DNA from: Paragordius varius
Taxonomy: Eukaryota > Animalia > Nematomorpha
Length of the DNA stretch: 64,000 nt
Assembly: GCA_964247055.1 (NCBI GenBank)
Contig: OZ176054.1
Span: 10,416,001 to 10,480,000, forward strand
Direction of reading: 5' to 3'
Shown: piece by piece, positions 15,993-60,863 of the stretch
Numbering within the stretch: the stretch's first letter is position 1
How the letters are laid out: the number at the start of each line of letters is the position of its first letter
Notes under the pieces: generated by a model
Told to the model about the DNA's origin: nothing
Seen by the model: the letters and a program-made list of their open reading frames with translations, nothing else
Database searches by the model: none
Translations under genes and position numbers: made by a program

Positions 15993-16377
15993 TTAAGCAA
16001 GGTTTAAAATTATTTAAATACTTAATTTTCATGTAAACGAATAAATTTTAAATAATTTTATTGGAATGCTTCATAAAAAGTAAGCAAAATCAGAACAATT
16101 GGTACATTTGTATAATTTTTGAGTACCGAGAAGAGATATATTGTAAAGATGTAATCAATGCTATTGGCGAAGTTCTATATAAATATATTTAATGTAAATT
16201 ATTGCGATACTACCGAGGCAACAGGCTACTTTTTAACAAAATAAAAATTATTATACATATTAAAAATTTATACAGTATAATTTTGTTTACTCATGTTATT
16301 ATTGTGATACCAACGGTAACTTTTAAACAAAATAAAAAATTGTCATCGATATAAACAAAAATTACATAGTGTTAAAT

Positions 16378-18628: not shown

Positions 18629-21600
18629 GCGAACCGATCTTAAGCAATGTGTCCAACAAGATGGTAATACTAAATCCGCTAGAAGGTGGTTTTTCGAATT
18701 CATTGTTCAGATAAAATCATTGTTTTGAAAGATAATATATATATTTATATCTAAAATTATATCCGATCTCAATGAAACCACGAAAGAATCAAGTTTAGAG
18801 AAAAAAAATTATATTTTATTGCATTATTTAAGATTCTAAAATTGAATGACATCAATTTATACCCGTACACACAATTGATTGAATTAAAAAACAATATATC
18901 CTTTTTAAGAATTATACAGATAACACGTATAACTAAAAGATAAGTAATTATTAAAGACAACTAACTTATTATATTTGAATATATGTGATTGATAGTGCGA
19001 CTAATTTATATCTCTGGTTTATATTTTGCAGATTAAAATAACGGGTTATAAGCAATCAAGTGATTTTAGAGTAGGGGTCGGTCCTTAAAAAAAATAATAT
19101 ATTTATTATTTTTAAATTTTAACTGTAATTTTAATTCTTAGAACTTTAGGTTAAAAAATTATTAAAATTTACAAAACAATGACAAGACACCAAAATATCT
19201 CATTTTTTACTTTTGTTTATTATAATCCTAATAATTTAGATCCATTGAATATTAACGAAACGTATAACCAAATTATAATGCCTAATTCCTTGGACGGTAT
19301 ATTATAAAATTTGTTTTTAGTAATAAAAAATATGTATGGACAAAATATACTTTTACAAAAATTAGTTATTAAGTTAGATAACTCTGAATTAAAATTTAAA
19401 GAATGTGTTAGGTTGATAAGATTTTTTTAAACGGTTTCATCTCGGGAAATGGCCGATATTTGGATGATTTCGTATTTAAAGTTCAAAAATTTGATTGGAC
19501 CTAGTGGTTTTTAGATGAATTTATTTATATTTGCCGCATATCATCAAACATTGCCAAACAAGTTCCTTTTCAAGTTCTTCTATATGTTTTAATTTTTAAA
19601 TCCTGCTCATATATACCATTTGCACTCAAGAGTGTCCTTAAACACTTCAAGTTGGTCCTTAAGATTTTTACATGTATTTTTTTATTTAATTATTTTTTAA
19701 CCTAATTTTCTTCATATTTCTTCATTTAAAAATTAAAAATTTTACTGGGAAACCACTTTTTTATTTTGATTAATTTTTTCTATTTAACAAAATATTAACT
19801 TTTAAATGTTAATGAATGAAAAATTCTAAATAATAACTTAGAAAACTTATATATTTTTTAATTGGGTCTTAAAATCTTATATATATCCAAAATAATTTTA
19901 AGAAATTAATAAAGTTATACGGTTTTTCAATGAATAAAAGTTGATATTGATTTAAAATTTATGTTAAATAATAGAAAATAGGTTAAAAACGATAAGATAG
20001 ATGAATAATTGATTTAATTTATAAAAGTTAAAAATATAAAAAAAACGTCAAATTACCAACTTGAAGTATTCAAGGACCAACTTTTAATGTTCAAGGACAA
20101 ACTTGAACTGTTCCAGGACCAACTTGAAATGTTCAAGGACACTCTTGAAATGAAAGGACACTCTTGAAGTGCAAATGGTGTATCAGTAATGCCCTTTGTT
20201 TAAATCAGAGGTGTCCAACACCACCCGCGCGTATGCGGCCCCTCGAAATATTTCTACAGCCCGCAAAAAATGTCATCTAGTATAAAGTTTTACGAAAACT
20301 AATTAAAAATTATTTTTAAATAAATTTCCTGAATTTTGGCAACGAACTTGTAAAATTTGTTAAAATAAATTATAATTTTTACAGTCCTATGTTAAATCTA
20401 ATAAAATATATGCGTGTGCGGCTACTCGCCAGTTTTTTTGGACCTTAATACGGTCCGCAAAGCCATTTATCGAGGACAATCTAATCTAAATGATCAATTT
20501 TAAAATTTTAGCGCCTTCAACCGAAAAATTGACTTCTAAATGAGAAAGAAATATATTTGTAAACGTACAAAAGTGATTAAAAATTGAAATAACGGTTTTA
20601 GGTTTGATAATTTTATATCTTTTTTAAATTAATATTCAATATTTTAATTTTAGAGTTTGAACCTCCAATTTACGTTAATAAGACAGAATTAGAAGCGCTA
20701 TCTCACTCAAACCAAGGTTACTTTAAATACAATATAATCAAACATATTCATATCAATTCTGTAATATACTATTTTACAATACCAATCTTAACTATGTTGA
20801 TTTAAAAAAATAGGGTTGCTTAGTTTTCAGCTAGTATTTTAGATGTTAATTTTTAGTTTAATGTCATAATTTTTACTACTTATTAACGATTGCATTTATA
20901 CCATAACAATTTTTTACATATAATATATTTGAAAAAGGTATGACCCTAATCAAATAATTATGTCTTCATAAATTTAAACTCTAATTTAAAAATTAATAAG
21001 TAAGATACAATCTGTCTTAGCTAAAACATTATAACTAGACGTTTTTTTGTATACTATAAAATTCTTGAAACCTAGTTTATAAAACTGTAATTTATGGTTG
21101 AGATTTTAAATATTATTTTAAAAAGTTAATTGCGGCTTGTTGCCTTAAGCACACAGTGATCAAAACAAACATTTTGTCGCCTTATTTATTATTATTCGGG
21201 CATATAGGTATCTTAATTTTTTATATAGGAAACGTGCTTAATTATAAACGTATTAGGTTAAATTTAATCAACTTTTAAAACATTATACTATAGGCTCATA
21301 TATTCAGAAGAGAAATTTTTAAAATTTAATCTGTAACTTGTCAAATTATATTGAAAGGGCATATATTGTTGGTATTATAAAATTGAATAGCATTTATATA
21401 ACCACTATGAGTGTAAGCATAACTATGTCTAAAAATATGAAAGCCAGGGAGATTCCAGATGTTCAAGCAGGATTGAATGGGCATAACACAAGAGATCACA
21501 TCTCGATTACATCCAAGCTTTTGACTCGATTAACCATGCCCATTTATGGCGAAGTTTGGAAGCAATGGGAGTTACAGCAAAGCTTATAACCTTGCTCAAG

Positions 21601-23522
21601 AATTTGAGAGCCATAATACTAACCCCAGTGGGCAGAACCAACGAAATTTTAATACAGAAAGGTGTTAGACAAGGATGTTGCACATGTTTAATATTTGTTC
21701 AGAAATGAACATGAAAAAAGTAGATGATGCCACTGAAAGCCTAAGGATAGAAGGGAAAAGGATTAAAAATCTAAGATTCGCAGATGACACGACTCTGATC
21801 GCCGATAATGTAAAAAGTTTAAAGAATATGATAAGGTTAGTAGAAGAAGAAAGTAAAATATATGGATTTATTGAACCTCAATCCGAAGAAAACCAAAATT
21901 ATGAGTTTATTAGAAAATAAACCTAATATTACCATAGACGACAGTCCAGTAGAAGCAGTAAATAAAATCTTATACTTAGGCTCTCTAATAGATATAAACA
22001 GCTCCTCCACGCCAGATAGTAAACGCCGCATAGCATTAGGGAAGTCAGCTGGGAACAAGTTGACTAAATTATGAAGTAAAGATATCACTACAAAAAGAGA
22101 GTAATGAAATGCATGGTTTTTCCGGTTGTTACTTATGCTGCCGAAAGTTGGACACTAAAACAGAATGATAAAAAAAGGAGGGCAGCATCTAAAATCAGGT
22201 GTCTCACAAGGTTAAGAATTACTCTTATTGAGAGTCACTTAATGGAAGCTATAATATAAAGAAAGTTCATATATATTGGTCACATTCTAAGAAGTACATC
22301 TCTTGAGAAGGATTTGATTTATGGAAAAGTTGAAGGGATAAGGATAAAAGGAAGATCAATGTTAAGATGGCTGGATACTGTAAAAAAGGAAACTGCTAGA
22401 TGTATAAGGGAATTGGAAGAAATAGCATGGGAAAGAGAGAAGTGGAGAGAGCTCGTCATTTTAATTTCCAAGGGGTCGAACTTGACTTAAGGAGCTAACT
22501 ACCATTATAATTCACATTGAAAAAAACAGAAAGGACAAAGTTAGCCTATTTTAAACACCAATGAACTAAGACTAATATATTACAAATATCTGTAATAAGT
22601 ATTGACATATATTCACATATACCATTTTAAATGAAAAAAACGAACATATATTGAAGAAAACGAACTGATATGTGAACATTTCTCAACAATAGTAATCGAG
22701 TTTCGGGCCTGTTAATGATTGGGAACAAATGTTTTATTTTTGACAACAGCTTTCAAATAATCACTATTTTTGCTGGTCTCAAAGTTAAATAGGAAATACA
22801 TTCACCAACAACTTATTAAAGAAATGGTTTAAAATAAAAATAATCAAATTTTACTCAATTTCCTGCTTAAATTTTGCGTTGGAATGAAAACAAAAAATAA
22901 GAATTATCAGTGTTTCATGAAAGTATGATTGCTAACTTCTGAAACGATAATTTATAAAAACTTACTTTTAATAAACCTAAGGTCGTTCGTGACTTAATAC
23001 ATATTGACGACATGAAAAAATGATTTGCATATAAATGGTAATACCCCAACGAAACTGATTAAAATTAAGGGTGCCAAGTGATCGATTCCTATACAAAGCT
23101 CTAATATTTAATTTTCTAATTCCTTTTGAAAAGAAAAATGAAAAATATATATTAAAGAAATTTTCTTTTTTTTATTTAGACGAACCTAACATAGGCAATA
23201 CGTCCAACAATATTGTAATACTAAATCCGTTAGGTAGGTTTTCAAATTCATTGTTAAAATTAAATCACTATATTGAAAAATAATACATATGCCTATGTAT
23301 ATCCATAGAAAAATCGCCTCTCATCTATAAAAATATATCCGATCTCGATGTAACCATTGCGAAAGAATCAAGTAAAAATTTGAGGAAATTATGTTTTATT
23401 GCATTTTAAGATTATTTAACGACATTTGGTTATCACAATTAATTAAATTTAAAAAACAATATTGTCCCTTTTTACAAATTATACAGATAACACGTAGAAC
23501 TAAAATACAACTAATTATTAAT

Positions 23523-23571
<49 letters not shown>

Positions 23572-26500
23572 TAATAGTGTTTCAATTTATATATATATGG
23601 TTCATATTTTTAACGAGTTATAAACATTCAAGTGGTTTTAGAATAGCGGGCTTTTAAAAAAATATTCTTCTTTATGTTTTTAAGTTTAACTGTATAATTT
23701 AAATTTTTAAAACTTTAGTTTAAAAAATATATTATGTAAATGAAAATGGTAAAATTTTGCAAAACAATGACAAGACACCAAAATATCTCGATTTTTATAT
23801 TATTTATTTTAATTCCTAATAATTTAGATCCATTGAATATCAACAAAACGGACCCCCAAATTAAAATGCTTAATCCCATGAACGGTATATAAATTTGTTT
23901 TTTGTGATAATAATACTATATTATTTAAGTTGTTTAGTTTAATTATCGTTAGGTTAATTTTCGCGGTTTCTTAGACGAGATATTAATTTGTGATACATGC
24001 GGTGATAAACATACATAAAAATCATTATCAAGTATCGAGTCTTAAGAATTTTTGTGCATATGATGTCAGAATCACTCAATAATACGGAATATAATTATGT
24101 ATATATATGTTAATTTAGAAAACAGATTATATGCTTATTTAGGAGAGGCAATTAGTGAAAATAAAATTAACCCTTATGAATCATCAAAAGTTTAATAGAT
24201 CTTTGAAATTTTATCTCGGGAAAGCGCCGATTTTGAATGATTTCGTTACTTGACATTTTAAAAATTTGATATCATTTGGTATTTTTTGAATAAAATCTTC
24301 TATTTTAATGTATTTGCCGCCTATAATCAAACATTGCCAAACCATTTCTTTTTCTAGTTTTTTGGTTTAATCCGGCTCATATATAAAGTTATGCCTTTAG
24401 CGCATTCCGTTCATCTAATTAATTCTACAGCCCGCAAGAATTTTGTAATATAAAACTAATTTTACGAAACCTCATTTAAACTTAAAAACATTCATTTTTG
24501 GAATAAGTTTTTCCGAATTTTACCAATGAATGAACTAGCAAAAATTGTTAAAATAAATTGTAATTTTTCCAGTCTTATGTTAAATCTAATAAAATATTTG
24601 TGCCCATATATTTTGCGAATGCGGCTCGCCAGATTTCTTGATCCAAAAACAGACACCCCTATAAAGGATCAATTTGAGATGTTTTAAGACCCCTTCAAGA
24701 AAAAAAATGATTTCTAGGCATGATTAATTTTTTAAAATTTGAAAGAAATATATTATTAAACGTAGGGAAAAGTGATTAAATATTAATAGGGTTTTAGGTA
24801 TGATGATTTTATATGTTTTAATATTTTCATTCTTGATTTATTTATTATAGAAAATGAACCTCCAATTTACGTGGATATGACAGAAACATGGCCATCCATA
24901 TCAAATCAAGGTTACTAGTCTAATATAATCAATCATACAGATCTATTCTGTAATAAACCATTTCACTATACCAATCTTACCTTAAGTTAGTTTTTTAAAA
25001 ATAGAGCTGCTTAGTTATTAAATTAGATACGTAATTATAAAATCGAAATCAATGTTTAAATTTTTTCCATAAATTTCAATGCTGAATTGCTATTACCAAC
25101 TGCTTTTTTTCATATATAAGGGACCCCCCTAATCAAAAATTATGTCCTTACAATAAACTATAATTTCAAATTTAATAAGTAAGATACATTTCTTAGCTAA
25201 AACATTATATCTGGACGTTTTTTGTATTCTATAAAATTGTTGGAAAACCTAAAACTGTAAAACTATTGTTGAGATGTGTTGAAATATTGTTTAAAAAAAG
25301 TTATGCTCCTTGTCCAGCACACTGTGATCCCAAAACAAACATGTTGCCATATTTAAGTGTCATATTTAGGGTGCATGAGTATTTTATTAATATTTTAATG
25401 GCGGGAAAAGTGCTTCGGGAGTTATATAACCTATTAAGGTTAAACTCATTCAACTTTTAAAACATTATACTATAAGCTGATATAAGGCATTTTTAAAATT
25501 TAATTTATGTAAAAACTTTTCAAATTATAGCTATCGAGGGGGCCTATTTTGATATTAATATTAAGTAGCATTTATATAACCATAACCAGTGCTACAACCT
25601 GTAGATAATTATGTGTAAAAAATAAGTAACTAATTCGATTAACTAATAAGCATACCAATTAATAAAATGTAAAAATTACAAGAAAAATTAATCAGCTGTT
25701 CGGCACGTTTTTTGGGCGTTTTATATGTTAAAAGTAATTCCAGCATTTCCGTAAAAAATCTCCCATTTAGTCAGATCAAAAATTTCAACACACTATATTT
25801 TTATGCTAACAAATATAATTATAATAAGGATTTTATCTAACACAACCTTTTCTATATTGATGGCAAAGATGTGATTTTAGATTAAGGATTCGTGTTATAA
25901 AGGGTGCTTTAGAAAATTTAATGCTATGTTTGCTCTAACTAGCGTTTATTAAAAACATTATATATATACTGCTAAAATATTTAAGATTTACTCTTTATTA
26001 TCATTTTATAATCTTTCCCTATTTTGTATACAATGACATTTTGGGGTAATATACCATTTGCACTTCAAGAGTGTCCTTGAACACTTCAAGTTGGTCCTTG
26101 AACATTTCAAGTTGATCCTTGAACACTTCAAGTTGGTCATTGAAGAGTTTAAGTTGGTCCTTGAACACCTCAGGTTAATCCCTGAACAGTTTAAGTTGGT
26201 CCTTGAACATTTTAAGTTGGTCCTTGAACACTTAGAGTTTGACCTTAAAATTTATAATTTTGATTTAACCATAATTTTTGCATTTATTTTTTTATTTTAT
26301 TATTTATTAACCTAGTTTTCTTTATTTATTAAATATTTATTTAAAAATAAATTTTTTTAATTGAAAAACTACTTTTTTGTTTCAAACTATTTTTTTTGCA
26401 ATCGAACAAAATTATTGACTTTTAAATGTTTTTAATGAAAAATTTTAATTAATAACCCAGAAAACTTATATATTTTTTCATTTCGTGTTAAAATCTTATA

Positions 26501-29500
26501 CAAAATTTTTTTAAGAAATTAATTATACGGTTTCTCAAAGATTAAAAGTTGATATCGATTTGAAATTGTTAATTAATAGAAAATAGGTTAAAAACAATAA
26601 AATAAATTAATTATTTACGATTTGATAAAAGTTAAAAACAAAACAAAAAAGTCAAAGGACCAACTTGAAGTGTTCAAGGACCAACTTAAAGTGTTCAAGG
26701 TCCAACTTGAACTGTTCAGGGACCAACTTGAATTGTTCAAGGACCATAAAATGTTCAAGGACCAACTTAAAGTTTTCCAGGACACTCTTGAAGTGCAAAT
26801 GTATTCTACTTCAGAGAGAGAGAGAGAGAGAGGTATGATGGTATAGTAGGTAGGGCGCCGGACTCTTAAACTGCTTGCCAGAGTTCGAACCCCGAAACTA
26901 CGCAATTTTTCCATCATCACTGTCAGTCCAGTCAACAAACTAATTTTTTAAAAGTTTGTTGTTTGAATTATAATTATCAAACCCTCTTTACATGTAATAG
27001 ATAAAAACTATAAATTTTACATTTTTGAGAGCCCCAAATTCAGATAGCTCCAAAATATGATGAAGACGAACAGCTGATATTAAAATTTATAAATATTGAA
27101 AATTTACTTGTAATTTAAAATTAAGCTTATAAAAATTATTTTTATTTTGATAACATTAATTTGCCTGTTGTGTTTGCGATTAAATAATTAAAAAATGTCG
27201 ACAAAAAAATTTAAGATTACGATTGTCTTACAATTTTAAATTAATCAAAAAAAATTGCATTATGCGCCCATAAAACCAAAGGAATCATTATACTTTCCAA
27301 GGCCCAAAGCTAAATGATTTTTTAAGATAATTAAATTTTAAATGACTCTAGTGCATATAACCACCTCAAAAGGTCATGGATGTGTTATCGAAATGATAGA
27401 CTTCAATATTAAAAAGATTGATAATTATTTTACAATAAAAAAATTATATTGAGTCCTCACACACTATTATGGTAAACTTTAAGTATAATTCATATTTTAT
27501 ATATTAGGCGCCTTAAATTCTAGCAAAATTATATTACTCCTTCCATTAGATGTTAAATAACTTACACTTTTTCAGCATATCTGCGAATAACACATATTTA
27601 TTTCTATCTAATTATATATTATGCCTAAGGTGGTGACCAGACGTCCCACTTTTTCACACTTTGTCCCGCGTCCTGCTACGTTTTTAAAATGTCCCGCTTT
27701 TTCACGATTATCTAAAAAAATTTTTTTTTCAATACCAATAAATTTTTTTTATCCGTTTAAATTTTTTATCATTAAATATCTTTAAAATCTATTCAATTTT
27801 AAATTAAAATTTTTTATTTTTAAATTAAAAATATTTATTTTTTTCGAATTTATATCATATGATTATACACTTTGCTTCCTATCATCATTATCAAAAAGCC
27901 AAGTTAATAAACAAATCGGTAGCTTAAAAGACCAATTGATAATACAAATCGGTACCTTACACGTTTATTCCAGAAAATTAAGGTAATATAATATTTATTA
28001 TACTAATAGTAGTTTATAAATATGAGCACAAAAAGAGGTTGTAAATTCAACGATAAATTAATGAAAGATTTTCCTTTTATCAAAACGAAGAATGAATCAT
28101 TTGTTAAATGTTTTTTATGCGAGGGGGAATTCACCCTAGAACATGGCGGCAAGCTTGATATTACAAAGCATATGGAAACACAACAACATAAAAAAATGTT
28201 TGGATATGGCGGCATCATCTTACAAAATGAGCGATTTTTATCGAAAAACCGCTTTTGGAGAGGAAGAAAAGAATTTGGCATTAACCGAAGGCGTTTTATC
28301 TTTTCACGCCGTTTATCACAATCATTCCTTTAGATTTATGGATTTTACCTCACAAGTTATTCGCACGTTATTCCATAAAAAATTTACATGTGCCCGTACA
28401 AAGGCTGAAGCCATTGTGTGCAATGTCCTTTCGCCACATGCATTTTCTGAAATACAAAAAGATTTGCTGAAAATTAATTTTTTATCCCTATTCTCTGATT
28501 CAAATCACCATGAAAAAATTATTTCCCACTTTAATAAGATATTTGGACTCAGAAACCGGAAAAATAAAATTTTAGATTTAATTTCTCTACCCGGTGAAAA
28601 TTTCGAAATACATATTCTAGAAAAAAATAATTTAAAAGACAAAATTATCGCATATTGCGCTGACAACACCAATACGAACTTTGGTGGAGGAACAAAATAT
28701 ATTTTTCAAAGATTTACAGGTAATCTTAATCAAAACATGATTGGCGCTAGGTGTGCAGCGCATATTATGCACAACAGCTTCGGGTATGCAGCGCATTTAA
28801 TACACAACGTTATTCAAACAGCTGCTGATTTATTGCCCCTAGATGTGGAAAATGTAGTTGTTAAAATATATTCCTATTTTTATATATAAACGGTACGTGT
28901 TGAAACGCTTAAAGATTTCTGAATAAATGCAGAAGTTCAATATCAAAAAATGCTGGGATATTGTAAAATCGTTGGTTAGCTTTTATGCCAGCTATCGAAA
29001 GAATTTTAAAAATGTATGATCCTTTAAAATCATTTTTTATCACAAGACAAATGTCCTACAACTTTAAAAAAGTTTTTTGAAAGTGATTCTTCAAAAATAT
29101 GGTTGGAATTCTTACATAATCAAGGTTCTCTCTCAAAATTTTATTAAATTTTTAGAAGGTGACAAAATTTCGGCAATCGAAGTAGCCAATGAAGTTAGTA
29201 ACCTGAAATTCCAATGTCAAGAACGGTTAGAAAATAATTTTATACCATTAACCATCCGCAATATAATAAATAATTTAGTAAAACAAGGCTTAATAAATCG
29301 CCAAGATCTGTACCATATAAAAATGTTTTATACAAACTGCAAAGATTATTTGGAAGACTGGACTACACAATTCAATGAAATTGATCATCATTGGATAACA
29401 TTAAAATCAGAATTTAATTGGTGCCATGTTCAAAAATCATTTGATTATATCTGCTCCCAAAAATTCTCAAAAATTGATCTTTCAGAAAATGATCTTTTTT

Positions 29501-32500
29501 CTGAAGTATCATTAGTTAAAAGATATATTAATAATGAAAAACTTAAATTATGGACAAAAGAAAAATATACAGTAGAAAAGAAATGGTTGGAAATATGTCA
29601 TCATTTTGAAACCAACTATATTACATACAATAATATTTGAAAAATTGTGGAATTCACACTATCTTTACCTGGAACCAACGCTGCTACTGAGCGCGTTTTT
29701 TCACAGTAAATCAAGTGTGGACATCGGAAAAATCAAATTTAAATGTTGAAACTTTAAAGGCCGTTTTATCTGTCAAATATAATTTGACAAATTCTTGCGA
29801 AGACTTCTACAATATTTTAAAAAATGATGACAATCTGCTAAAACGCATTCACTCAAACAAAAAATAAACCAAAGAAAAATATTTTCTTATATTTATAAAG
29901 TTTTTATGTTAAAAAATAAATAAAATTACTTAAAATATTGTATAAGTCTTCATAATTTGTCAAATTATATTTGAACACATAATATGGCTTTTATTCAACA
30001 TTTAAATTTGATTCCGTGTCCTTACTTTATTTACTGGGGAAAAACGCGTTCAATAGCAGTGGTTCAGGTAAAGATAATGAATTATTATTGTATGGAACAT
30101 AATTTGTTTAAAAATGATGTTTTAACCATTTCTATCCTACGTATTTTTATCTGTCCATAATATAAGTTTTCATTCAATATATTTATTTAATAATGAGACT
30201 TCATAAAGTGTCATTGTGCACCGTCTTGTCTTCCAAATAATCGTTTCTGTTTATATAAAACATTTTTATATTCTGAATATTCATTGAGCCTTGTTTTTAT
30301 GGATGCTTTATAATATTGCGATTAGGTAATGGTATAAAATAATTTTCTAACCTTTTTTGACTTGGAATTTTGACCTTTGTCCTGTGATAAAAAATAGGAT
30401 TCTAGGAGATCACATTTTTATAAATATTTCAATCGCTGGCAAAAGAGCTAACCAAAAGTTCTACAATATCCAAGCATTTTAACATCTATATTTTCTACAT
30501 CGGTAACAAATCAGTAGCTGTTTGAATAGCGTTGTGTATCTGCCAATAATGTTTTGATTAAGATTATTCGCTAAATTGTTAAAAATATTTTTTGTGCCGC
30601 TTCTTGCATCACCCAGCGCACTTTGTGATGATTTCGTCTTTATATTTTTTTCTAGAATATTACAATCACTTCACCCTTTGTTCGTGCACATGTAATATTG
30701 AATAAAGTACAAACAACCTGTAGGTACAAATTTTTTTATATTTATAATGTATTTGTGTTAAAAATAAATAAATATTACAATAAATTTTTTGTATAAAAAT
30801 TTTTGGTTGTACCCCCCAATGACCCCCCCCCCTTCTCAGATTTGTCCCGCGTTTTCCTTCAAAAAATCTGGTCACCTTAATTATGCCTATAGAAAATGAA
30901 CCTCCAATGTTAATAAATGTATCCGGAAATACGTTTACTCCAATCAACTCTAAAATGAAAATGAGTAAACACCGAAATAATATAAATTTCAAGTTTAAAA
31001 CCTTTTTCAATATAATGCCATAGATGTCGTTTCAGATTACTATTTAATTCATAGTTAAAGAACATATTTTTACATTTCGGTTTGTCGCAAATTTTAATAT
31101 CAAACAATTTGTTATTTAATAACAGGGTGCCATTTTCAGGAAACTTTATGTACCAATAAACTTACTTGCATTGGGGTTCTTCGAAACTATTATTGAATAT
31201 ATATTGGAACCAAAATATAAATTATATTTACAGTAATGAAATATTTTAAAACACTACCATAATTTTAGTTTGTTGAATATAACTCATTCTTTTAAACTGC
31301 AAAGTATGAAATAAGAGTGTAAATTGGTAACATAATCAATTATAATTATCACTTGTATTAAATATAGGGTGACCAGATTATTAAATAGAAAAAGCGGGAC
31401 AACCCTGAATGGAAGGGAGGAGGGCATTACTATCAAAAATTTCTAAAAAAATTTATCGAAATATTCTTTATTAAAATTAATACAATTTATAAGTATAAAA
31501 AACCACGTTTGGTCACCCTAATAAAATTGTTTAATGGAAGAATAATTGAGAATTAAAAAAGTATGGTTGTCACTCAGAAATATATTTCTTTTATCATTAC
31601 TATTATATGTATTATATTTTAGACCGTTTGAATTCCAGTAATATAACTATCCTTACTCCATTAAATAGTAATTTTTTCTACTTTTTTGCACGTCTGAGAA
31701 TAACTAATAGTTAGTTATTCATATTTTAATATATTATATTTTAGAAAACGAACCTCCAATTCTCGTAAATATATCCGAAACTACAACTGACCCAATTAAC
31801 TCTGAAACGAAGATAAATGAGAAAAGTAAAAAATGATGCCTATATTTTTTATTAGTATATCATTAGTATTTGGGAAAACGTTTCTAAATGCTAAAATTTA
31901 TATAGAAATTTAATAAACACTAATAAACCGCTAATAAAAAAGCCGTCAGTGCATTTGTGCATTTAAATAGCTTCGGAATTTGAAATATATAAAGTATATT
32001 AACCAAAGTTAAATTCCCAATCAAAGTTTTCTTATTATAAATATATTTTGAAATTTTAACCTAGGCTTTGCCATTTTATTGCATGGTAAAAGTCGAAAAT
32101 TTTAAACCAGAGCGCTAAAGCTTTATATGCATTTAGACTTATTAGAACTTTAGGTATATGCTATAAATTAGTGATATATTTAATGAAATAAAAATTAAGG
32201 ACAAAAATTGTCCAATGTGTTTTACTGGTTTTTGTTTTTGCCATTCATTTTTGAATATCGCTTTTGGCCCTACAATATTGGTAATAGTAGAATATTCAGT
32301 TTTTATCAATGTTCAAAACGTAGATCTCAAGGTTTAAAATATTATTTCTACAAACTTTATAAACACTATAATTTAGCCCCGTTTTTTTCACAAGGGCCTA
32401 TTTTTCAGGCATAAGAATAATAACTTTATTTTAAATTATCAATGAGTAAAACATTTTTTTTGTAAAAAATCTATACAGGTTTTATTTAAATCAATATAAT

Positions 32501-34078
32501 TTATACAGATATACATATATTTTAGGACACAACAATTCTAGCAAAATTATCATACTTACTAAGTTAGATGGTAAATTTTTATATTTAATAGGGGTAACGC
32601 ACCCTTATTCTCAAAAACGGTTTTTTGGTTTTTTTAATATATAAATTTGCTTATAGAAAAAGAACCACCTATCTTTGTAAATGTACCCGAAAATAAAACT
32701 ACATCAACTAACCAACACGAAAATATGAATGAACAACCATCAAGTATATTTAATTTTTTACGAACAACTCATAAGGCAAGTGGAGTTCCCAAAAGGGAAC
32801 GGCCCCCAGGGGGACAAGGAAAATTTAAAGGAAGCGCGAAAAATTTGTTGAATTTAATTAAGAAATAAAATTGGAAACAAATTTAGGGATATCGAGTGTT
32901 CGAATTATTTAGATTTGTCACCGATATGGGAATTATATTTCAAAAAATGCAGATCTAATGATCTCATTGATTGGGATTTTAAGCTATGATAATATATTTT
33001 GCATTTTTATCTTGGATTTTTAAGGGAGGCGCAAAAATTTTCATTTTCAATTTGGTGGGGCGTTAACAAAAAAGGGTTGGGAACCACTGCAATATGGTAA
33101 AAACACCAATGTCTTTTAAGCCTAATTATAACAGATTAAAATAATGATAAATAAAGATGTTTCTGAATGTAAAATTTGTCTAAAATTTTGGGATTTATAT
33201 TTTAGATCAGGGGTTATATGTATATATTTAAAGCTCTCTGCTTTATTCTTTAGAAATTATATGGACAAAAATAATCAGCTGTGCACTTAGTTTTTTCGTT
33301 ATGGTATTTAATCCCCATTTCCTGGATCTGAATATTTTTGACCTCCTAGCAAACGGATTTAATAATATATAAATAAATAAATGAAATTAGTTAAATACTA
33401 TGCCGACAAATGTTACATACCTGTTTGACATATATGCAGATTTTAGCTTTATCTAAAATCAAAAACAGTACAAAATTAAAATAGCTTAGGGCCACAAAAA
33501 GCATTTTTAGGGATATATGCAAACCGTCTGTGATTTTAGTACCACTGAGTTAGAGGTAGGTTAAATATTTATTCGTGTATATTTTGATACTCTTCTCAAA
33601 AAAATATATTTTTTTAAAATAATAAATATATTTATTATACACATATATATATTTTACAAACTATAAAATTAGCTCCTCAAAAGACATTTGCGACAGGAAC
33701 TTCACAACTGAGCAAACCTGCATCATCAGAACCATCTCTCCTTTCCACATCAGCCAAAGGTTAATTTATATAATTTAACAAATTTTTAAATTTTCTAAAA
33801 AGTTTGAAATAAATATATTATTTTGCTAAACATACAGGCGAAGCCTTACTTGCTGTAGGTAATAGATGTTAATTAATACTATATAATTTATAAAATATTT
33901 TTAAATTTAGTATTTTAATGTTATTGAAATATTTCCGATAGCTGCAGCTGCTGGTGGTGGTTTAGGTATGTTGATTTTTGTTTTAAAAAACTTTCTATTC
34001 AGATTGGCTGAAAGCTATTTCTAAATGCCATTTATCAATATAATTTATCTAGTCTTGACAGGTTATATATATATATAC

Positions 34079-34111
<33 letters not shown>

Positions 34112-36212
34112 CAATAATTTTTATGCGGTAATTTCAGAAATATGTAAAGTCATCAAAAAACTCAAAAGAATGATTATTTTCAGAATATAAGAATCCTTCT
34201 GGTGTTGTTTTAAAATGGGGCTCTTTCGTGTAAAAACTAAAATATCCCTAATGACCAAAATATAAATTAATTAGGGGTACATTTAGCTAGAAATCTCTCA
34301 AAAAACTTAACACCACGTTTGAAATTAAGAAATTTTAGCATATAATCAAAGTTTTTATGATAATTTTCTAACATACATAAGGGTACCTAAATTTTTAACT
34401 GTAGAAATTAGTTTTGACCGCACAAGGCCGAAGATTTTTTCATCAAATTATTTGCTAATGCTCATATTTAAAATGAAATTTTGAGATGCTGGTATTTTAA
34501 ATGCCATAAATTATGATTAAAATAGTGCTACAAAAAATGAGATTGCTATATTACAAAATAAGACTAAATTTTTTATAATGCCATACCTCTAACATCACAA
34601 ATAAATTGAATGTCCAAAAGACAATCATACTTTTTTAATCCTTATTTTTTTTAAATATAATTCATGTTTTAGACAACCAAGTATATCTATAAGATGGCGA
34701 TGTATATTGATAACACAATCAATTATATATATATTTGTAAATAAATCAATTACATGAGAAAAATTTAAATTTAAAAAAAGTATGATTGTCTTTGAGAAAT
34801 TTTTTTTGACTGTTTTATCCCTATATTTTCAGTTTTTTTACTGTAAATTCAAATTGTTTTCTTTTACCCAAGCATGGTAATATAACTGTTGTTGTATCCA
34901 CAAAATAGGATGGATTGCAAATCAAAATGGCTGACATCTATATATAAAATAAAATTAGTTATCCGTAATCACAAATATTTTAGCGTCTCCTTGAATGAGT
35001 TTAAATCATATTTGAATATAGGTGCGGGTGCTGAAGCCGCCGCTACAGGAGGGCTAGCTACGGGCGCAGCTTTAGAAGGTATGCAAAAAATATTTTTCGA
35101 TTCAAAAAAATGATATATCTAAAAGTGTTGACAAAAAAATGTTATGCCAATGTGTGATGAATAAAATTTTGAACTGATATGTGATATACGTAAATTGAAA
35201 ATTGTTATAAATTATTTGTATAATAAAAATTAAATTGTTAAAAAAAGCAAAAACAGTATAAACAAACATTTAAGACTTATGACCTATTGGGGTAGGTTAT
35301 ACCCCAGACCGTTAAAAAAATTTTAGCCTTTTAGCCGCAGCAAACTTATTTTTTAATTGGATCCATATCTTAAACTTATTCGCCGTCATTTTTTTTATTT
35401 TTAAGCGCTAATTAAAAAACTATATGCATTTATGATTAATATATATATGATTAACTTTAAATTTCAAAATTTAGCAGATATTGATTATTGATTATATCAG
35501 CAGATCGTTTAGGGACTCTAGAAGTCAAAAAACATGAAATATAAGTTTTTTATATAATCACGAGAAGCGGGTTTCCTAATTCAATTTTAACTGAATTTAA
35601 GTTCCCATCAGAAACCAAAATGTCACCGTATACAAAAAAATGAAAAAGTAATAAATTTTGTTTATGTCTAATTTTTTAAACTTAATTATTTTAACACCTA
35701 TCGTAATAAATGCAAATTGGGGAACTTAATACACACTGATTCGTTAGTTGTCAGATAGGAGATAGAAAATTGTGAGACGAAAATATCGTGTTTTATAAAC
35801 ATACATATTTATCATGTTTTGTCCTTTGGATTTTTTCGGTAACTTTACTGTAAAAAATTAATTTATTCTTAAATATATTTCTGATAGCCGGTGCCGCTGG
35901 AGCCGAAACCGTTGCAGGTCTAACTTTAAATACTACTTATAATATAGATGCCTATCCAAAATTATATAAATTATATTATCTTTTGCACCTTTAAATTTTA
36001 CACATATTGCAAAAGCAAAAATTATTTTTCAACTATATATAGCAAATCTTGACACAATCGCTGGTGAGAATGTCGGAGAATCCTTCGAAATGTCAAACAC
36101 AGGTGTAATAATAAAAATATTATATTTTTTCAGTAATGTACTCACAATAAGTTTAACTTAATATATGAATTTTAATTAACTCTCTAATTTAGATATTATT
36201 GAACTGGATTTA

Positions 36213-36250
<38 letters not shown>

Positions 36251-39200
36251 CAAATTTGGATGAAACTGCCCTATCTCAACCTGGGCCTTCTAACGGTATA
36301 TACAGATAAAATTAAAATTCTCGAGACAAAACTTTTATAACTGAAACAATATTTTTTTAACTATACTTTTTTTAACCTTAAATTTACCATATGATCTAAT
36401 TGCAATTTCGGAATATAAATAATTTGGTGTACTCCTAATTTACAACACTATTTCCTTGCAGTTATAAATAAGGATATAAAATATGCCGGTTTTTTTAAAA
36501 AAAACACATGTCTTTATATTTTTACATTTTGTTTGTTTTAATTGCGATTTTTTACTGTAATTTAATGAAAAGCTTTGAGTATCCTTATAATTATTTCGAA
36601 TTTATTTATATAAATATTATTGAATGTTTAGCACAAATCAGACCATCTCCATTTGAGGGTATGCCATAATAAACGCTTATACATGGAATTTGTAAAAATC
36701 TTTTAAACCAATAATAATAATATAGAGAGCCCACCAGGTCTAGTGTTCACATCTTAATATATATTATTTTTCAAATCTATAATTATTTTCATAAAATTTA
36801 CTTTTAGATGCCAAAATTCCTCGTTTGAATGGTAATTTAAAATTTAAAATATATTTTAAAACTACAATTTTTTAAATTTTTTCATATGACATATTAGTTG
36901 ATGCGGAATCTAATTTAAGTATATAGACATTTAAATTAATATTCCCCAAGAGTGTTTAATCTTATACACATAATTATACATAGGTGAAAACAATGAGCAG
37001 CTATTTACAGGTGTGAAATAATTAATTTTTTAAAACACAGATAGCGATGATACTATAAGTGATATCGAATCTCCCCAAGCTAATGAGGAAGTTGATGGAC
37101 AAGGCGCTAATGGTAATACATTTTATGCTTTATGAAACAAAATAAATATTTTGTTTGAATATACCATCAGTCAATATACTAAAAAATAAGTTAATAAAAA
37201 AATTTTTTAAAAATTAATAGTTGATTAACAAATAGTTAAAATATGGTTTTTAAAAAAATTATATATATGCATAAACTCAGAAAATGTTGAAAATGCCGAA
37301 CCCGGAGAAAACCCAGAGAGTGATGAGGATGTTGAAAATTATGATGAGGAACCCATAGGTTTTTAAAATATGCATTCTAAAATCTGGCAAACATTGGCTA
37401 CTCTTTATTATATTAAGCTGAACTTTAAATTAAAATTCTACATAATTTTTTCATCCAATCTTATCAATTTTCACATATTTTACATCTTTAGGTAAAATTT
37501 AATAAAATAAGACTTTAAACAGACCCTGATATACGGTATTTTGGCAAAAATATTTTTCTAATTTTCTTGAAATTAAATATTTTAAGTAAAAAAAGTAAAA
37601 ATTTGATGTTCAGTTACTCTTTAAGTTGATATGTTTTGCTTTTGCTTATGATGTTCGATTGGTAAAATTATGTTAGTTCATGAAAGTTATTGAAACCGCT
37701 TCTATATTAATCCATACAAAAATTTTCGACGTAATTGATATTCAAAACACCAGTATAAGACCTAATTTGATTAAAAAAATTGCGATTTTATCAATATTTT
37801 CATTAATTGTTAAAAATATATTCGGACACCCTTAGAACCAATTTTGAACGGTTAACTTTATTTTGTTTAGCTTTGTGACATTTTATCTTTTATGAAGGAT
37901 GACGACGGCATTCTAAATATATTACGTTATTTTTTCTATTGGTTAGATCCTAATGATATTGTAGACAATCCGGAATACATAGCTTTGCGTAGAAGTAAAA
38001 TTTACGATAAATAGAAAACTATACGGACAAAATCTAAATATGTAAAGAGAGTTTTTTCAAAAAACAACCATACTTTTATAAATCTTAATTTTTACCTTAT
38101 AAAATTATTTAATAACAATCGTAAAAATACATTATAATTAATTGTGTTACCAATATACAACTCTATTTCATACTTTACAGATTAAAACAATGAGTATATT
38201 AGAAAAAACATGATATAAAGCGGGTGGTTGTCTAATATTAGTAAAAAATATTAGTCTTTCGTTATATTTTTACGTTTTGTCCATATAATTTCAATTTTTA
38301 CTGTATCTTTGACATATTAATTATAGGTTTCGATACAATGACACGACGTAAATACTCATTATATCATGATACGAAAAATTAAAACTTTTATTTAATATAA
38401 TTAATATAGTTTTCGAAAGAATTTCTTACGGTATTAGATATTTTTTGCATTTTATCCTGATGAATATTTTTTATTTTTTTTTATTTAGCCGCTGATATCA
38501 CAGTGGAAAGTGGTGTGGCGATTTGGCAAAATGGTATAATAATAATTTTTCATGGTTTAACCCTCTAATGTTGTTGTAGCTAAGAACGGCGGCGATTTGT
38601 CGCTATTTTTTAAGTGTAGTTATGCCAGATTGTACGGTTAAATGTGATGCATGTCAATTGCATTGTTAGTTGGGTTTATTCAGATAAATTATCGATTCAA
38701 CGCATTTATATCTGCCAAGATTTCTTGAGCCTTCAATTTTTCCTGACATGAGCTGATACTCCAAGTTTTTGGCTTTAGTGATCTGGCCGAAGTATGATAT
38801 GTTTCATTTTGAGCCATAAGCCGCATAAGGATTCAGGTTTAATGTTATCGAGGTTTTCATGTTTTTAATTTAAATCTATTTAATTTATCTGTAGCAATTT
38901 TCTCCAGGACAACATTATAAAGGCATTTATATATCTTTCATTTCCTTTTTATGCAACGGCGTAAACAATGCTTGAGAAGATTAGAGATATGACTAATCTG
39001 ATCTTGGTTTTGAGTTTGATATCGTGAGATGACCATAGTTTAATGTATATATTTATCATATTTGCTTATATCATGTTTAGGTGCGTAATTTATTGTTTTT
39101 TAGGGTTATAATTATAAAGATTGGTCAAAATTAGTGCATTGTAAATTAAGAATTTTAATAAGAAACCCATAAATTACAGTAAAATTATGCCATGAGTATA

Positions 39201-41564
39201 AATTATGTTTATAGTGCTCTCGATTCCATATCTTACAACCTTGATAATCATATAATATATGTTAAAATTTGGTCCAAAAGCTTGAACGTTATCGTTTCAA
39301 TTATATTTATACAATCATTTGAAATATTGTTGCTTATTATTTCGCGCAAAAATAAATTAGATATCGATATATATAATATACATAATATTGTTATCATAGA
39401 GGTGTTTTAATAATTTTCATTGCATAAATTTAGCAAATAATTTTAAAGATGTGAATTTTTTCAATTATTTTGTTTTATACAACGCATAAAAGAATTGACT
39501 TTGACATAGTTTGCTTGCATAGTGCGCTAATCTGAAGAACTTTTAAAGATGATAAAATTACGTCATATTTTTTAGCTGTTAGAATGCGTGGATTCACTGG
39601 CTTTCTTGAAGGTTATATCGATATAATTTATGGTTCATGCTTAATTTATTTGCGGAAAATATATTAAAATAATTTTATTTAGTCCAAAGAAATAGTGGTA
39701 TTCCAAATGGTATGCTAGTCATTTGTTAACTATAGCCCCAAGTTTTCAAAATTTATATATTATTTAAATTTAATTTTAGAAAAAAAATTAGAACATAGAT
39801 ATTAACAAAATGGCCTAACAGCTGATTATAAAAATTTGTATTTAATGTGTATAATCATTAATAAGCTATTTTTCCGATCTACATTAAATTGTGTAGTTAT
39901 AAACAAGATATGTTTTATATCATCAATTGGACAACCTAAAACAAATCAAAAAACTAGTGTGCCAAAAAACGGACCTTTTTAAACAAACAAAACATTGTTA
40001 AACTTTTACGTTTAAGGCCTCGCCAAATTTTACTTAAACTTTAAAATTTAAAAATTGATTTTTGCATCTTAGACGCTTTACTTTATTGTCCGGTATTGGT
40101 ACACATGTTTATAGATTATGTACTTACTGTAAAAACACGCTTTGTAAAATTTTAGTCATTTAATTCACAGATAAAAAAATATATTATATAAATTCATAAA
40201 AACAGGTGACTGTTTAAAATTAAATTTAAAATAGTCCTTATATGCAAAATGATTTCCGAATATTGGAATACTACATTTTTGACCTTGCTATATAATCTTT
40301 TATATGATTATGAAATTTAGCAATGCGTCTCTTTTTATCAAGTAAACATACTTAACATAACACCATTTTTATAAAAAAATAATATTTTATTACTTGTAAA
40401 GGCATTAGAGAATCAGCAAACCGTAATTTTATTTATATATTTGATAAAAATAAAAGATCGATTCATTTAAAAACCCAACAATAAATTTGTTTATGAACAT
40501 GTTTTAGAGATTGAAGAAGTTGTTAATCGTAAGACCATTTTATTTTTACAAATTTTACAATTAATGGGGTTTATGTTGAGCAATGATTTTAACCAAGGGT
40601 GTGTAACATGCAGCCCGCGTAAAATTCGCAACTACATATTTCCCAAAAATATGGCTAAAAAATCTTAGTATAATATTTATATCCTAAACAAATTTCTGGA
40701 TAGTATCCAAACGAATTAAAAAAATTATAATGTGTTTGCATTTTACAAATCTAATAAATATTTATTTACCATATATATTACACATTCCACCCGCTGGGTT
40801 TTTCAAAAATGCGGCCGCGAAACCATTGATGTTATATCAATAAAAATATTTATCAACCAAAAATTTAATAACCAGCTATTTTAATACATTAATATCAGAT
40901 AAATTAGTTGTTTAAACACCAAATCCAAAAATTGTATCAATAAATATGTTATATATTGTATATAGAATTGGAAAATATCGCACAAAGTTTGTTTTTGAAT
41001 ATGATTTATGCAAAAATATTCAAAAAATTGATAATAATCTAATATCTTTAGATGTTCCACTTCAACCAGGTTCATATATCCGAAGAAATTCACAAAATAT
41101 AAATATTTTTTGAAAAATATTAAAATAATTATATACGTATTTTCGTTATGAAGCTGCTGAAGACATACAACAAGCATTAGGTATTAATTAAGAACTACGG
41201 AATAATTTAAATTCACTTTTCAAAAATTTAATGTCTTAAATTAAAAAACCCAATAGAAGAGATCAATTTCAACAATTGTAAGAACATTCCTTATATTTTA
41301 ATATGGATAATCTTTAATTTGCAATTTTTTTTTATTATATAGTTAACAACCCTGATCTCGAAAGTATTAATATAATTTTTATGAATTTATAAAAATTGAA
41401 ATAATTACCACCATATAACCAAATTAAATGCTGTTTGCGAACAGCTGCCCTTTTCAAAATCATTTTATATTGGAAATATTAAGCAAATTTTAAAAAACTG
41501 ACTGATTTTTTATGTAACATCAGCTTATGATGATGATCAGACGATACCACCCATTAATAAATAG
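18629..41564 (+). CDS. Unrecognised multi-micro-exon gene: low-complexity, N-glycosylation-rich / Ala-Gly-rich / acidic protein (~540 aa if all exons used); first exon not found
   Basis: AG/GT-bounded, stop-free, phase 1-1 exons: 18629-18685, 19240-19296, 20654-20716, 23180-23233, 23309-23371, 23828-23884, 24851-24910, 30893-30964, 31623-31667, 31745-31825, 32526-32570, 32657-32743, 33673-33759, 33838-33858, 33942-33965, 35022-35078, 35888-35917, 36043-36102, 36251-36295, 36632-36658, 36726-36737, 36808-36831, 36898-36918, 36984-37010, 37041-37112, 37281-37358, 37947-37994, 38489-38533, 39576-39611, 39683-39709, 40402-40422, 40508-40528, 41052-41069, 41154-41180, 41343-41363; terminal exon 41524-41564 (TAG) with AATAAA at 41579. 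Exons stand out as GC-richer islands. The weakest are 36726, 40402, 41052 and 41154. Confidence 0.75.
19614..20180. mobile_element. Fold-back MITE with 21-bp modular arms, family 1 copy a
   Basis: Ends TATA-CCATTTGCAC / GTGCAAATGG-TGTA; arms contain repeats of CTTGAACACTTCAAGTTGGTC; absent at the paralogous site (~24390) of the duplication. Confidence 0.85.
20206..20483. mobile_element. hAT (Charlie/Buster-like) MITE
   Basis: Starts CAGAGGTGTCCAAC with GCGGCCC subterminal motifs; paralogue at ~24410-24660; related copies at ~40590-40830 and ~41903-42186. Confidence 0.6.
21444..22499 (+). mobile_element. RTE-clade non-LTR retrotransposon, 5'-truncated and degraded
   Basis: RT motifs in shifting frames: REIPDVQAG, AFDSINH, KGVRQGC, KNLRFADDTTLIA, LNLNPKKTKIM, YLGSLI, KRRIALGK, FPVVTYAAESWTL, YIGHILR, GKVEG..KGRS.LRWLD; resembles BovB/RTE ORF 3' half. 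Confidence 0.9.
26052..26803. mobile_element. Fold-back MITE with 21-bp modular arms, family 1 copy b
   Basis: TATA-CCATTTGCAC start; ~8 left and ~6 right 21-bp units (source of the heptad-like ORFs 26058-26315 and 26622-26846); core homologous to 19670-20040. Confidence 0.85.
26832..26930 (+). mobile_element. tRNA-derived SINE (head resembles tRNA-Lys CTT), 3'-truncated
   Basis: TGGTATAGTAGG A-box, GGACTCTTAA anticodon-arm remnant, GTTCGAACC B-box, then body shared with 3864-4040; preceded by (AG)n. Confidence 0.65.
28022..29866 (+). pseudogene. hAT transposase pseudogene
   Basis: Zinc finger CFLC...HMETQQH, YCADNTNTNFGG, CAAHIMHN, LSLPGTNAATERVF; broken over several ORFs. Confidence 0.9.
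29929..30660 (-). pseudogene. Inverted, internally deleted copy of the transposase 3' region inside the hAT element
   Basis: Reverse complement is collinear with 28612-29820 (and 5265-6350) but ~730 instead of ~1200 nt. Confidence 0.88.
31365..31520. mobile_element. 156-bp hAT MITE (TAGGGTGACCA termini)
   Basis: TIRs TAGGGTGACCAGA / TTTGGTCACCCTA; GCGGGACAA subterminal motif as in the large elements; flanks match 6/8. Confidence 0.75.
32777..33089. mobile_element. hAT (Charlie-like) MITE
   Basis: Right end GGTTGGGAACCACTG, degenerate left end AGTGGAGTTCCCAAA. Confidence 0.5.
38003..38303. mobile_element. Tc1/pogo-type MITE (CAGTAAAA family)
   Basis: TATACGGACAAAA / TTTTGTCCATATAATTTCAATTTTTACTG-TA; further copies at ~45329-45615, ~49140-49422, ~50625-50930, ~55473-55765. 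Confidence 0.7.
38610..39042 (-). mobile_element. RTE-clade retrotransposon 3' fragment, heavily deleted
   Basis: Minus strand gives LWSSHDIKLKTKIRLVISLIFSSIVYA and SYFGQITKAKNLEYQLMSGKIEGSRNLGR, i.e. RTE C-terminal motifs. Confidence 0.75.
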
Positions 41565-42540
41565 AAAATAGCCCTTATAAATAAATCTTCATAAAATCTT
41601 TGATACCAATAATATTTTTCAAAGCTTGTTGATAAATATTGATAAAACACATAGAGATGAAAATTTTTTTACAATACACGTTATAATTTGTTGATTTTTA
41701 AACTTTTTATTTATATTTTTTAGACCATTTACCCGATTATACAGGTAATATATTATTATTGGAATTCGTATTCATCATTTCTATATTCTGTAGAACCGTG
41801 AGAATTATGTCTATATCAAAAACTTTATTGTGATATAAAAATTTTGTGTTAAATAAATATTGATAATACAAAATAAATTCGGGTATATTCAATGGTTAAT
41901 AACAGATATGTCACAAGCACCGCGGCCGGATGCGGCCTACAAAATAAGAAACATTAAATAAAAAGAAAATTATATAATTTGCGAAAATTTCGCTATTTAT
42001 TCTTAAAATAAAAACAATATTGATACCTTCTAAACAATTTTTTAATAATATAACCAGCGGAAATGGATGAATAGGTTTCATTCATATGGTGATGTTCGTT
42101 TTATACAGTTTTTACCTAATAAAATAATTATTAATGATCATTATTTTGTCGTGGCCCGCCAGTTTATTTCTTGTGACTAACATCTAGGTTGGGGTTTATA
42201 ACAATAATTATATGGTAAAAGTCTAATTTATAACTTAAAAATAAATACGTTATATCGAATAGCCAAAATTTTTACTATTTTATTAAGAATTATTGTTATT
42301 GAATGTGATTTATTGAATTGCGTCAAATATTATGTTTATCCAAAAATTATATCGATATTACTATAAAAAAATAAAAATGGACAAAATAAATAAGATAAAA
42401 GAAGTATAAAACAATTAATGTTTTTAAAAATTTGCAATATTTAGCATGTGCAAATTTAAATGATCGAAAAAAGGGTATGAATGTGGTGATTAAATATTGC
42501 AAAAAACAAGCGTTATTTGTTTTAAGCTCCAATCAAGCAA

Positions 42541-60811: not shown

Positions 60812-60863
60812 ACTAGCGTAAATCTCGTGCTGCTACGCAGCCCGAGGAAGTCCTTCGGACTTC
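60812..60863 (+). mobile_element. Putative Helitron/Helentron-type terminus with two hairpins
   Basis: ACTAG followed by hairpin CTCG-T-GCTGC-TAC-GCAGC-C-CGAG (60824-60846) and perfect hairpin GAAGTCC-TTC-GGACTTC (60847-60863); GC-rich island in AT background, ~130 nt before the array. Confidence 0.45.

Follow-up and report, generated by a model that had tools for sequence, protein, structure and literature searches.

A probable unannotated gene of short symmetric phase-1 exons in the genome of the horsehair worm Paragordius varius

We analysed a stretch of 64,000 nucleotides from the genome of the horsehair worm Paragordius varius (Nematomorpha; assembly GCA_964247055.1, contig OZ176054.1, positions 10,416,001 to 10,480,000), hereafter the window, within which positions are counted from its first letter. 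The plus strand of the window carries what is probably a real, unannotated and lineage-restricted protein-coding gene for an acidic, cysteine-free, N-glycosylated secreted protein. A sequence-only reading had pointed to a hidden gene made almost wholly of symmetric phase-1 exons, and both a re-derived exon chain and tests that ignore the reading frame bear this out. The re-derived chain is stop-free and comprises 33 internal exons bounded by AG and GT, 12-87 nt long with a median of 45. All 33 have lengths that are multiples of three (3n) and are in phase 1 at entry and exit; they are thus class 1-1 exons, starting at codon position 2 and ending after codon position 1. Fourteen of them are 36 nt or shorter and together account for 330 of the 1581 nt of coding sequence (CDS; 21%). 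The last base of every internal exon is G or A, never T, so no junction codon begins with T and any subset of the exons is free of stops; the earlier claim that every subset stays in frame is borne out, since all exons are 3n and phase 1. The symmetric chain as first proposed stands with modified counts (it had 35 internal exons, 15 of them of at most 36 nt) and with one A-type copy, A3 (44 nt), that breaks the rule, and every part of the peptide described earlier was recovered. The gene would extend over about 29 kb of the plus strand, with its start near 12.9 or 18.6 kb and its end near 41.4 or 41.9 kb, and we describe it as a head, a core and a tail.

The exons of the head (18.6-32.7 kb) are of two types, A with exactly seven members and B with exactly five. 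They are collinear on the plus strand, in the order A A' B, A A' B, A (hAT insertion) B, A B, A B. The A-type exons encode an N-glycosylation sequon, N-x-S/T, followed by I/V-x-I-L-x-P-L, and the B-type exons encode E-P-P-I-x-V-N-x-S/T. No further A or B copies and no upstream modules were found on either strand of the window.

18629-18685, plus strand: head exon A1, 57 nt, EPILSNVSNKMVILNPLE; A family, nhmmer 1.8e-16; acceptor at the 97th and donor at the 89th percentile
19240-19296, plus strand: head exon A1', 57 nt, PLNINETYNQIIMPNSLD; acceptor at the 98th and donor at the 99th percentile
20654-20716, plus strand: head exon B1, 63 nt, FEPPIYVNKTELEALSHSNQ; B family, with conservation beginning at the acceptor
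23180-23233, plus strand: head exon A2, 54 nt; young copy of A1 that lacks 3 nt, in frame
23828-23884, plus strand: head exon A2', 57 nt
24851-24910, plus strand: head exon B2, 60 nt; 3-nt in-frame deletion relative to B1, sequon lost (VDMT)
27508-27551, plus strand: A3, A-type copy in decay, 44 nt; a G is missing at the donor (22nd percentile)
30893-30964, plus strand: head exon B3, 72 nt; weak donor; the hAT insertion lies just upstream
31623-31667, plus strand: head exon A4, 45 nt, RLNSSNITILTPLN
31745-31825, plus strand: head exon B4, 81 nt; separated from A4 by a 77-nt intron
32526-32570, plus strand: head exon A5, 45 nt
32657-32743, plus strand: head exon B5, 87 nt; E-P-P-I retained through three synonymous changes

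The first two units of the head are a young tandem duplicate of 4.5 kb that includes three exons together with their introns. The only exon indels between its two copies are two of 3 nt, whereas the alignment as a whole has gaps in 22% of its columns. Identity among the older B copies is 71% over the first 36 nt of the exon but 38% in the intron before it and 42% in the intron after it; the conservation sets in exactly at the TAG acceptor and stays within the splice sites. A sequon is found at the aligned site in 7/7 A copies, written with different Ser/Thr codons (TCC, AGC, AGT and ACG), and the head as a whole contains 12 sequons, whereas shuffles that preserve its composition give 5.6 +/- 2.0 (P=0.0035). 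A glycosylation module of two or three exons, duplicated in tandem, describes the head better than a set of independent cassettes does.

The core (33.7-38.5 kb) encodes Ala/Gly-rich and acidic segments, and its exons are single copy within the window. Several of them were recognized by a frame-blind test, in which each AG...GT interval was scored solely by the contrast in GC content between its inside and its flanks, and the non-overlapping maxima were taken; the GC contrasts below are scores from this test.

33673-33759, plus strand: Ser/Thr/Pro-rich exon, 87 nt; GC contrast 20.6, found frame-blind
33838-33858, plus strand: micro-exon EALLAV, 21 nt; flanking introns of 78 nt and 83 nt
33942-33965, plus strand: micro-exon AAAGGGL, 24 nt
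35022-35078, plus strand: Ala/Gly exon AGAEAAATGGLATGAALE, 57 nt, 65% GC; contrast 25.7, the top frame-blind island
35888-35917, plus strand: Ala/Gly exon GAAGAETVA, 30 nt
36043-36102, plus strand: exon NLDTIAGENVGESFEMSNT, 60 nt
36251-36295, plus strand: exon NLDETALSQPGPSN, 45 nt; start like that of the exon at 36043
36632-36658, plus strand: micro-exon QIRPSPFE, 27 nt; followed by a 67-nt intron
36726-36737, plus strand: micro-exon SPP, 12 nt; flanking introns of 67 nt and 70 nt
36808-36831, plus strand: micro-exon AKIPRLN, 24 nt
36898-36918, plus strand: doubtful micro-exon DAESNL, 21 nt; acceptor at the 41st percentile, its sole support being the spacing of the 66-nt and 65-nt introns around it
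36984-37010, plus strand: micro-exon ENNEQLFT, 27 nt; followed by a 30-nt intron
37041-37112, plus strand: acidic exon SDDTISDIESPQANEEVDGQGAN, 72 nt
37281-37358, plus strand: acidic exon NVENAEPGENPESDEDVENYDEEPI, 78 nt
37947-37994, plus strand: exon PNDIVDNPEYIALRR, 48 nt
38489-38533, plus strand: exon ADITVESGVAIWQN, 45 nt; GC contrast 18.2, acceptor at the 100th percentile

The exon at 36043 had first been taken as 21 nt long (36043-36063); the 60-nt form outscores it and replaces it here. This exon and the one at 36251-36295 both open with Asn-Leu-Asp (CAAATCTTGAC / CAAATTTGGAT). They may be alternative exons, and their appearance is that of a tandem exon duplicate that has diverged.

The exon count of 35 alone proves nothing, because phase-1-open AG...GT intervals of 3n length are so common (559 in the region, with about as many in the other phases and strands). 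The frame-blind test gives a different kind of evidence. On the plus strand between 32.4 and 41.7 kb, 14 of the 19 GC-contrast islands are multiples of three (binomial p=3.8e-4) and 11 of these 14 are open in phase 1, compared with 2 of 9 multiples of three on the minus strand. Three islands on chain exons that are not 3n are those same exons extended to a later GT. At a contrast score of at least 8, the core has 20 non-overlapping phase-1 candidates on the plus strand and 0 on the minus strand. The core is also periodic by codon: G has a frequency of 0.48 at position 1, 0.14 at position 2 and 0.11 at position 3, C is highest at position 2, and A+T makes up 73% of position 3, much as in the genome. 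The high GC content of the exons thus sits in codon positions 1 and 2 and is therefore a coding signature. No frame-blind exon signal was detected at 0.1-18.6 kb.

The splice sites and the intron lengths point the same way. Measured against all GT and AG sites, the leave-one-out splice scores have medians close to the 90th percentile, and 24 of the 27 acceptors are TAG. Ten introns measure 65-86 nt, including four consecutive ones of 67, 70, 66 and 65 nt. Under generic splice rules, the configuration of exon, 60-90-nt intron and exon occurs 21 times in phase 1 on the plus strand, against 1-12 times in 17 controls (other phases, strands and regions), for a Poisson probability of about 2e-7 at a mean of 5.3. 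Beside the class of 65-86 nt there are two putative introns of merely 30 nt (37011-37040) and 49 nt (41745-41793).

Beyond the core, the chain continues into a tail of short cassettes (38.6-41.8 kb), for which several exons compete.

39576-39611, plus strand: tail exon VRMRGFTGFLE, 36 nt; good sites, 71-nt intron to the next exon
39683-39709, plus strand: tail exon QRNSGIPN, 27 nt; good sites
40508-40528, plus strand: doubtful tail exon IEEVVN of the sequence-only reading, 21 nt; weak sites
40966-40986, plus strand: alternative tail exon LENIAQ, newly recognized, 21 nt; 65-nt intron to 41052
41052-41069, plus strand: alternative tail exon VPLQP, 18 nt
41257-41277, plus strand: doubtful tail exon EINFNN, of the type first proposed, 21 nt; weak sites
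41343-41393, plus strand: either the terminal exon first proposed (stop 41391-41393, AATAAA at 41556) or an internal 21-nt exon NNPDLE with its donor after 41363
41724-41744, plus strand: possible micro-exon HLPDYT, 21 nt; best splice scores of the tail
41794-41880, plus strand: possible alternative terminal exon completing a split Glu codon, then Pro and TGA (41799-41801); AATAAA at 41852 and 41872, acceptor score 4.5

The candidates at 40966, 41052 and 41724 outscore the exons at 40508 and 41257, and weak splice sites leave three micro-exons poorly supported (36898-36918, 40508-40528 and 41257-41277). The terminal exon with AATAAA described earlier is present, but the 3' end is ambiguous, as an equally good route runs through 41343-41363, 41724-41744 and 41794-41801 to the AATAAA signals at 41852 and 41872. 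A GC-richer stretch follows the exon at 38489-38533 (38560-39000); it includes a possible alternative terminal exon at about 38580-38640, open in phase 1 to a TAA, with no poly(A) signal noticed nearby.

At the 5' end, where no signal-peptide exon had been found before, we tentatively propose a candidate.

12943-13015, plus strand: candidate first coding exon (ATG plus 24 codons plus 1 base) with a signal-peptide-like start, MHFSHIFYISLIIFPIIAS|RH; phase 1 at its end

This is the best of four upstream candidates that combine an ATG, a hydrophobic stretch and a phase-1 donor. It has a hydrophobic core and an in-frame stop 12 nt upstream, its donor lies at the 93rd percentile, its GC contrast is 8.4 and it is single copy.

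The product deduced from the chain would have about 515-530 amino acids (aa), 0 Cys, a pI of about 4.2, 12% Asn, and 81 Asp+Glu against 27 Lys+Arg. It would begin with the putative signal peptide and continue with five N-glycosylation repeat units (A and B exons), a Ser/Thr/Pro linker, an Ala/Gly/Glu-rich segment spread over micro-exons, a strongly acidic segment and the short-cassette tail. By charge and hydropathy, its composition is on the disordered side overall, with the exceptions of the Ala/Gly segment and the putative signal peptide. We found no transmembrane exon with usable splice sites, and the product is for this reason read as secreted and heavily N-glycosylated; a membrane protein of type I, with NPEY as a motif in its tail, was considered and dropped on the same ground.

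Several results weigh against the existence of such a gene, or of parts of it. None of the sampled words of the locus (0.00) occurs in the RNA runs listed for the species. A core query of 66 aa (three joined exons), searched with HMMER against 1.84 billion representative proteins including transcript-derived ones, had no true match; its two matches, one to an acidic protein of repetitive sequence and one to a surface repeat protein from a bacterium, are both compositional. Taken separately, neither the head nor the tail (38.6-41.8 kb) shows an excess in GC contrast. The candidate first exon sits 5.6 kb upstream of the head, and the call of a signal peptide rests on hydrophobicity, in AT-rich DNA in which runs of Ile, Phe and Leu are common. 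A3 lacks the symmetry of the other exons, and splicing it in would throw the reading out of frame; with A3 broken and the sequon of B2 gone, decay may have set in over part of the head. Exon identity between the copies of the young duplicate (70-81%) is no higher than that of the introns (44-81% in the flanks). Of the other searches, Pfam gave no match for six exons, and a comparison of the open reading frame (ORF) at 34889-35113 with the called ORFs of the species and its relatives gave none either, the query itself not being recovered. A sequence search with the A/B module likewise turned up nothing similar, a blank to which no weight attaches. On the side of the gene, in a run from a related organism, the share of sampled words was 0.17 over 10 kb and 0.47 over an exon-dense 341 nt, which is only a hint of exon conservation.

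These results bear on four other explanations. One is chance, a chain picked out of hundreds of AG/GT-bounded open intervals in AT-rich DNA. The abundance of such intervals in every phase and on both strands speaks for it, as do the concession of the sequence-only reading that symmetry guided its choice of exons and the fact that some tail exons are no better than background; yet the frame-blind tests, the strand asymmetry, the codon periodicity, the intron-size class and the family of repeated modules are not expected from it. As an account of the whole pattern we give chance almost no credence; it is largely refuted for core and head and possible for the single small exons at 36898, 40508 and 41257. 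A decaying or dead gene, that is, an unexpressed relic with a frame so far unbroken in most exons, would fit the lack of an RNA or protein trace in the searches made, the broken A3 and altered B2, the transposons within the introns and the rate of change of the exons of the young duplicate, about that of its introns. We hold this to be very unlikely, as more than 30 exons have kept both an open frame and their AG/GT sites, the core has strong codon periodicity with AT-rich third positions, the exon indels are in frame, and the older module copies are conserved within the exons only. The A/B array (18.6-32.7 kb) and the Ala/Gly and acidic core (33.7-38.5 kb and beyond) might also be separate transcription units of two or more genes. 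Any phase-1 exons can be chained, so continuity of frame is no proof of linkage, and head and core are sharply unlike in composition and GC contrast. However, the gap from B5 to the next exon is 929 nt, an ordinary intron size at this locus, neither a terminal exon for the head nor a start exon for the core was found, and the two are collinear on the same strand, which makes separate genes improbable and a single transcript for head and core the more plausible arrangement.

The remaining alternative does not dispute the gene and concerns the use of its exons. The sequence-only reading saw in them a combinatorial system like that of the micro-exon genes (MEGs) of flukes, with symmetric cassettes skipped in many combinations to yield variant secreted proteins. 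As far as the sequence goes, the structural potential for cassette skipping is real: every subset of the 3n phase-1 exons is in frame and stop-free, the neighbouring exons at 36043 and 36251 start alike, as duplicated alternative exons do, two 3' routes are available, and fluke MEGs and aphid bicycle genes share the exon phase and size class. The same architecture nevertheless occurs in genes that are not combinatorially diversified, it is expected as a by-product of exon duplication, which is directly visible at the locus, and the head units resemble structural repeats with conserved motifs, not free cassettes. We therefore judge such diversification unlikely here. Under the interpretation that we prefer, that of a single gene for a secreted glycoprotein, the gene would have grown by tandem duplication of units of exon plus intron. 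Duplicated units of this kind keep the frame only if their exons are symmetric, which would account for the uniform phase, and growth by exon-unit duplication explains that uniformity most simply.

The resemblance to MEGs is partial. Alternative splicing has been demonstrated for MEGs, and, as DeMarco et al. (2010) reportedly set out, most of the CDS of a MEG lies in micro-exons of at most 36 bp; at the locus, such exons hold only 21% of the CDS. The MEGs of Schistosoma have 10-20 exons, mostly 15 bp, with internal exons of 6-81 bp and a longest product of 189 aa (PMC10526429). As in those genes, the locus has many short 3n internal exons and much longer introns and was missed by automatic annotation, and it likewise belongs to a parasite, has a secreted product (here predicted) and has no homologue found beyond its lineage (PMC10526429). 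Its exon sizes (12-87 nt, all 3n) agree with those of MEGs, the two 87-nt exons being just above the range. In contrast to MEGs, its roughly 35 exons have a median length of 45 nt, and its product, at about 520 aa, is nearly three times longer and contains internal repeats. The first exon of a MEG encodes an N-terminal signal peptide, to which the candidate at 12943-13015 might be the counterpart. No sequence link to MEG families came from the 66-aa core query or from Pfam on six exons. The likeness to MEGs first proposed thus holds for the symmetric phase-1 micro-exons and not for the CDS share, the size of the product or a relationship in sequence.

The same exon phase is used by the bicycle genes of aphids, in which almost all internal exons start at codon position 2, many are micro-exons, and the secreted products carry paired CYC motifs (PMC9168663). 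The aphid megacycle is a single large gene with more than 100 micro-exons and a product of about 2000 aa (Korgaonkar et al. 2021; Stern and Han 2022, PMC9168663). The locus resembles both in that all its internal exons start at codon position 2 and many are micro-exons. Unlike bicycle proteins, its product has 0 cysteines and hence no CYC motifs, the animal lineage is another one, and no homology was detected. Further marks of the bicycle genes are expression in the salivary glands and secretion of the products into the host. A third comparison is with the class 1-1 genes for modular extracellular proteins, such as tropoelastin, which follow Patthy's exon-shuffling rule; the exons of elastin all split codons alike. 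Uniform phase 1, 3n exons, duplication of exon units and a low-complexity, Ala/Gly-rich extracellular product (predicted here) are features in common. The locus differs from tropoelastin in having neither Lys-Ala cross-linking exons (there is no Lys in the Ala/Gly segment) nor hydrophobic repeats of the VPG type, in a strongly acidic and sequon-rich product, and in many exons far below the size of a whole domain. It is a further example of a known gene architecture, and not a member of the MEG, bicycle or elastin-like families.

Expression of the gene would mean that a class of genes for secreted proteins escapes standard annotation in an AT-rich, transposon-rich genome, and the locus would add an animal lineage to the few that build secreted proteins from long strings of symmetric phase-1 micro-exons. 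The mechanism of growth can be seen directly, in a three-exon unit that was tandemly duplicated and in the later transposon insertions and the decay of one copy. A full-text literature search returned no paper naming both horsehair worms and micro-exon genes, and the words exon and intron are absent from the preprint on the genome of Gordionus montsenyensis. Horsehair worms manipulate their hosts, and given this, hidden and fast-evolving secreted glycoproteins would be natural candidates for effectors or coat proteins, which is speculation. A bolder proposal, to which we give little weight, is that the locus is one of a large undescribed class of phase-1 micro-exon genes in Nematomorpha, independent of MEGs and bicycle genes, that would vary a coat of secreted or surface glycoprotein facing the insect host by cassette skipping and by the birth and death of exon modules.

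The window is AT-rich throughout (about 22-36% GC per 2 kb). On the minus strand, at about 42.5-58.9 kb, lies an HGS/Hrs gene with VHS (3.5e-18) and Hrs_helical (2.3e-16) matches; the probable micro-exon gene, on the plus strand, lies upstream in the window and converges on the 3' end of HGS. The exons of HGS are ORF-sized and their best acceptors are in differing phases. This agrees with the mixed phases noted earlier for this gene, and the wider statement that uniform phase is not a trait of the whole genome holds just for housekeeping neighbours such as HGS. A second gene on the plus strand at 41.7-63.8 kb was considered and rejected, as a 1-kb tandem repeat and antisense HGS exon sequence account for the excess of 3n islands there. 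Two mobile elements lie in introns of the head.

21300-22500, plus strand: reverse-transcriptase-like retroelement fragment in the intron between B1 and A2, recognized from ORFs and their translations
28000-30660, no strand assigned: hAT-type DNA transposon in the 6-kb intron from B2 to B3, between A3 and B3, recognized from ORFs

A second hAT-type copy is found at 4900-5550. The composition of the window (about 25% GC, with DNA transposons) agrees with that of the Gordionus montsenyensis genome, which has 26.9% GC and 63.8% repeats, mostly DNA transposons. Two introns contain foldback elements resembling miniature inverted-repeat transposable elements (MITEs), at 19611-20183 and at 26049-26233 and 26655-26820. 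Each arm is built of repeats of a 21-bp unit (CACTTCAAGTTGGTCCTTGAA), with opposite orientations in the two arms, and the two insertions are about 80% identical over 500 nt. At the far end of the window, a unit of about 1010 bp, with a GC content high for this genome, is repeated in tandem in at least three copies (60800-64000), and the array continues past the window end; related sequence occurs at 8060-8310, and the repeat raised the control counts on the plus strand. Short, GC-richer palindromic motifs of the type GGGGTA...TACCCC recur in non-coding sequence (15421-16001 and 35275-35310) and are probably MITE termini.

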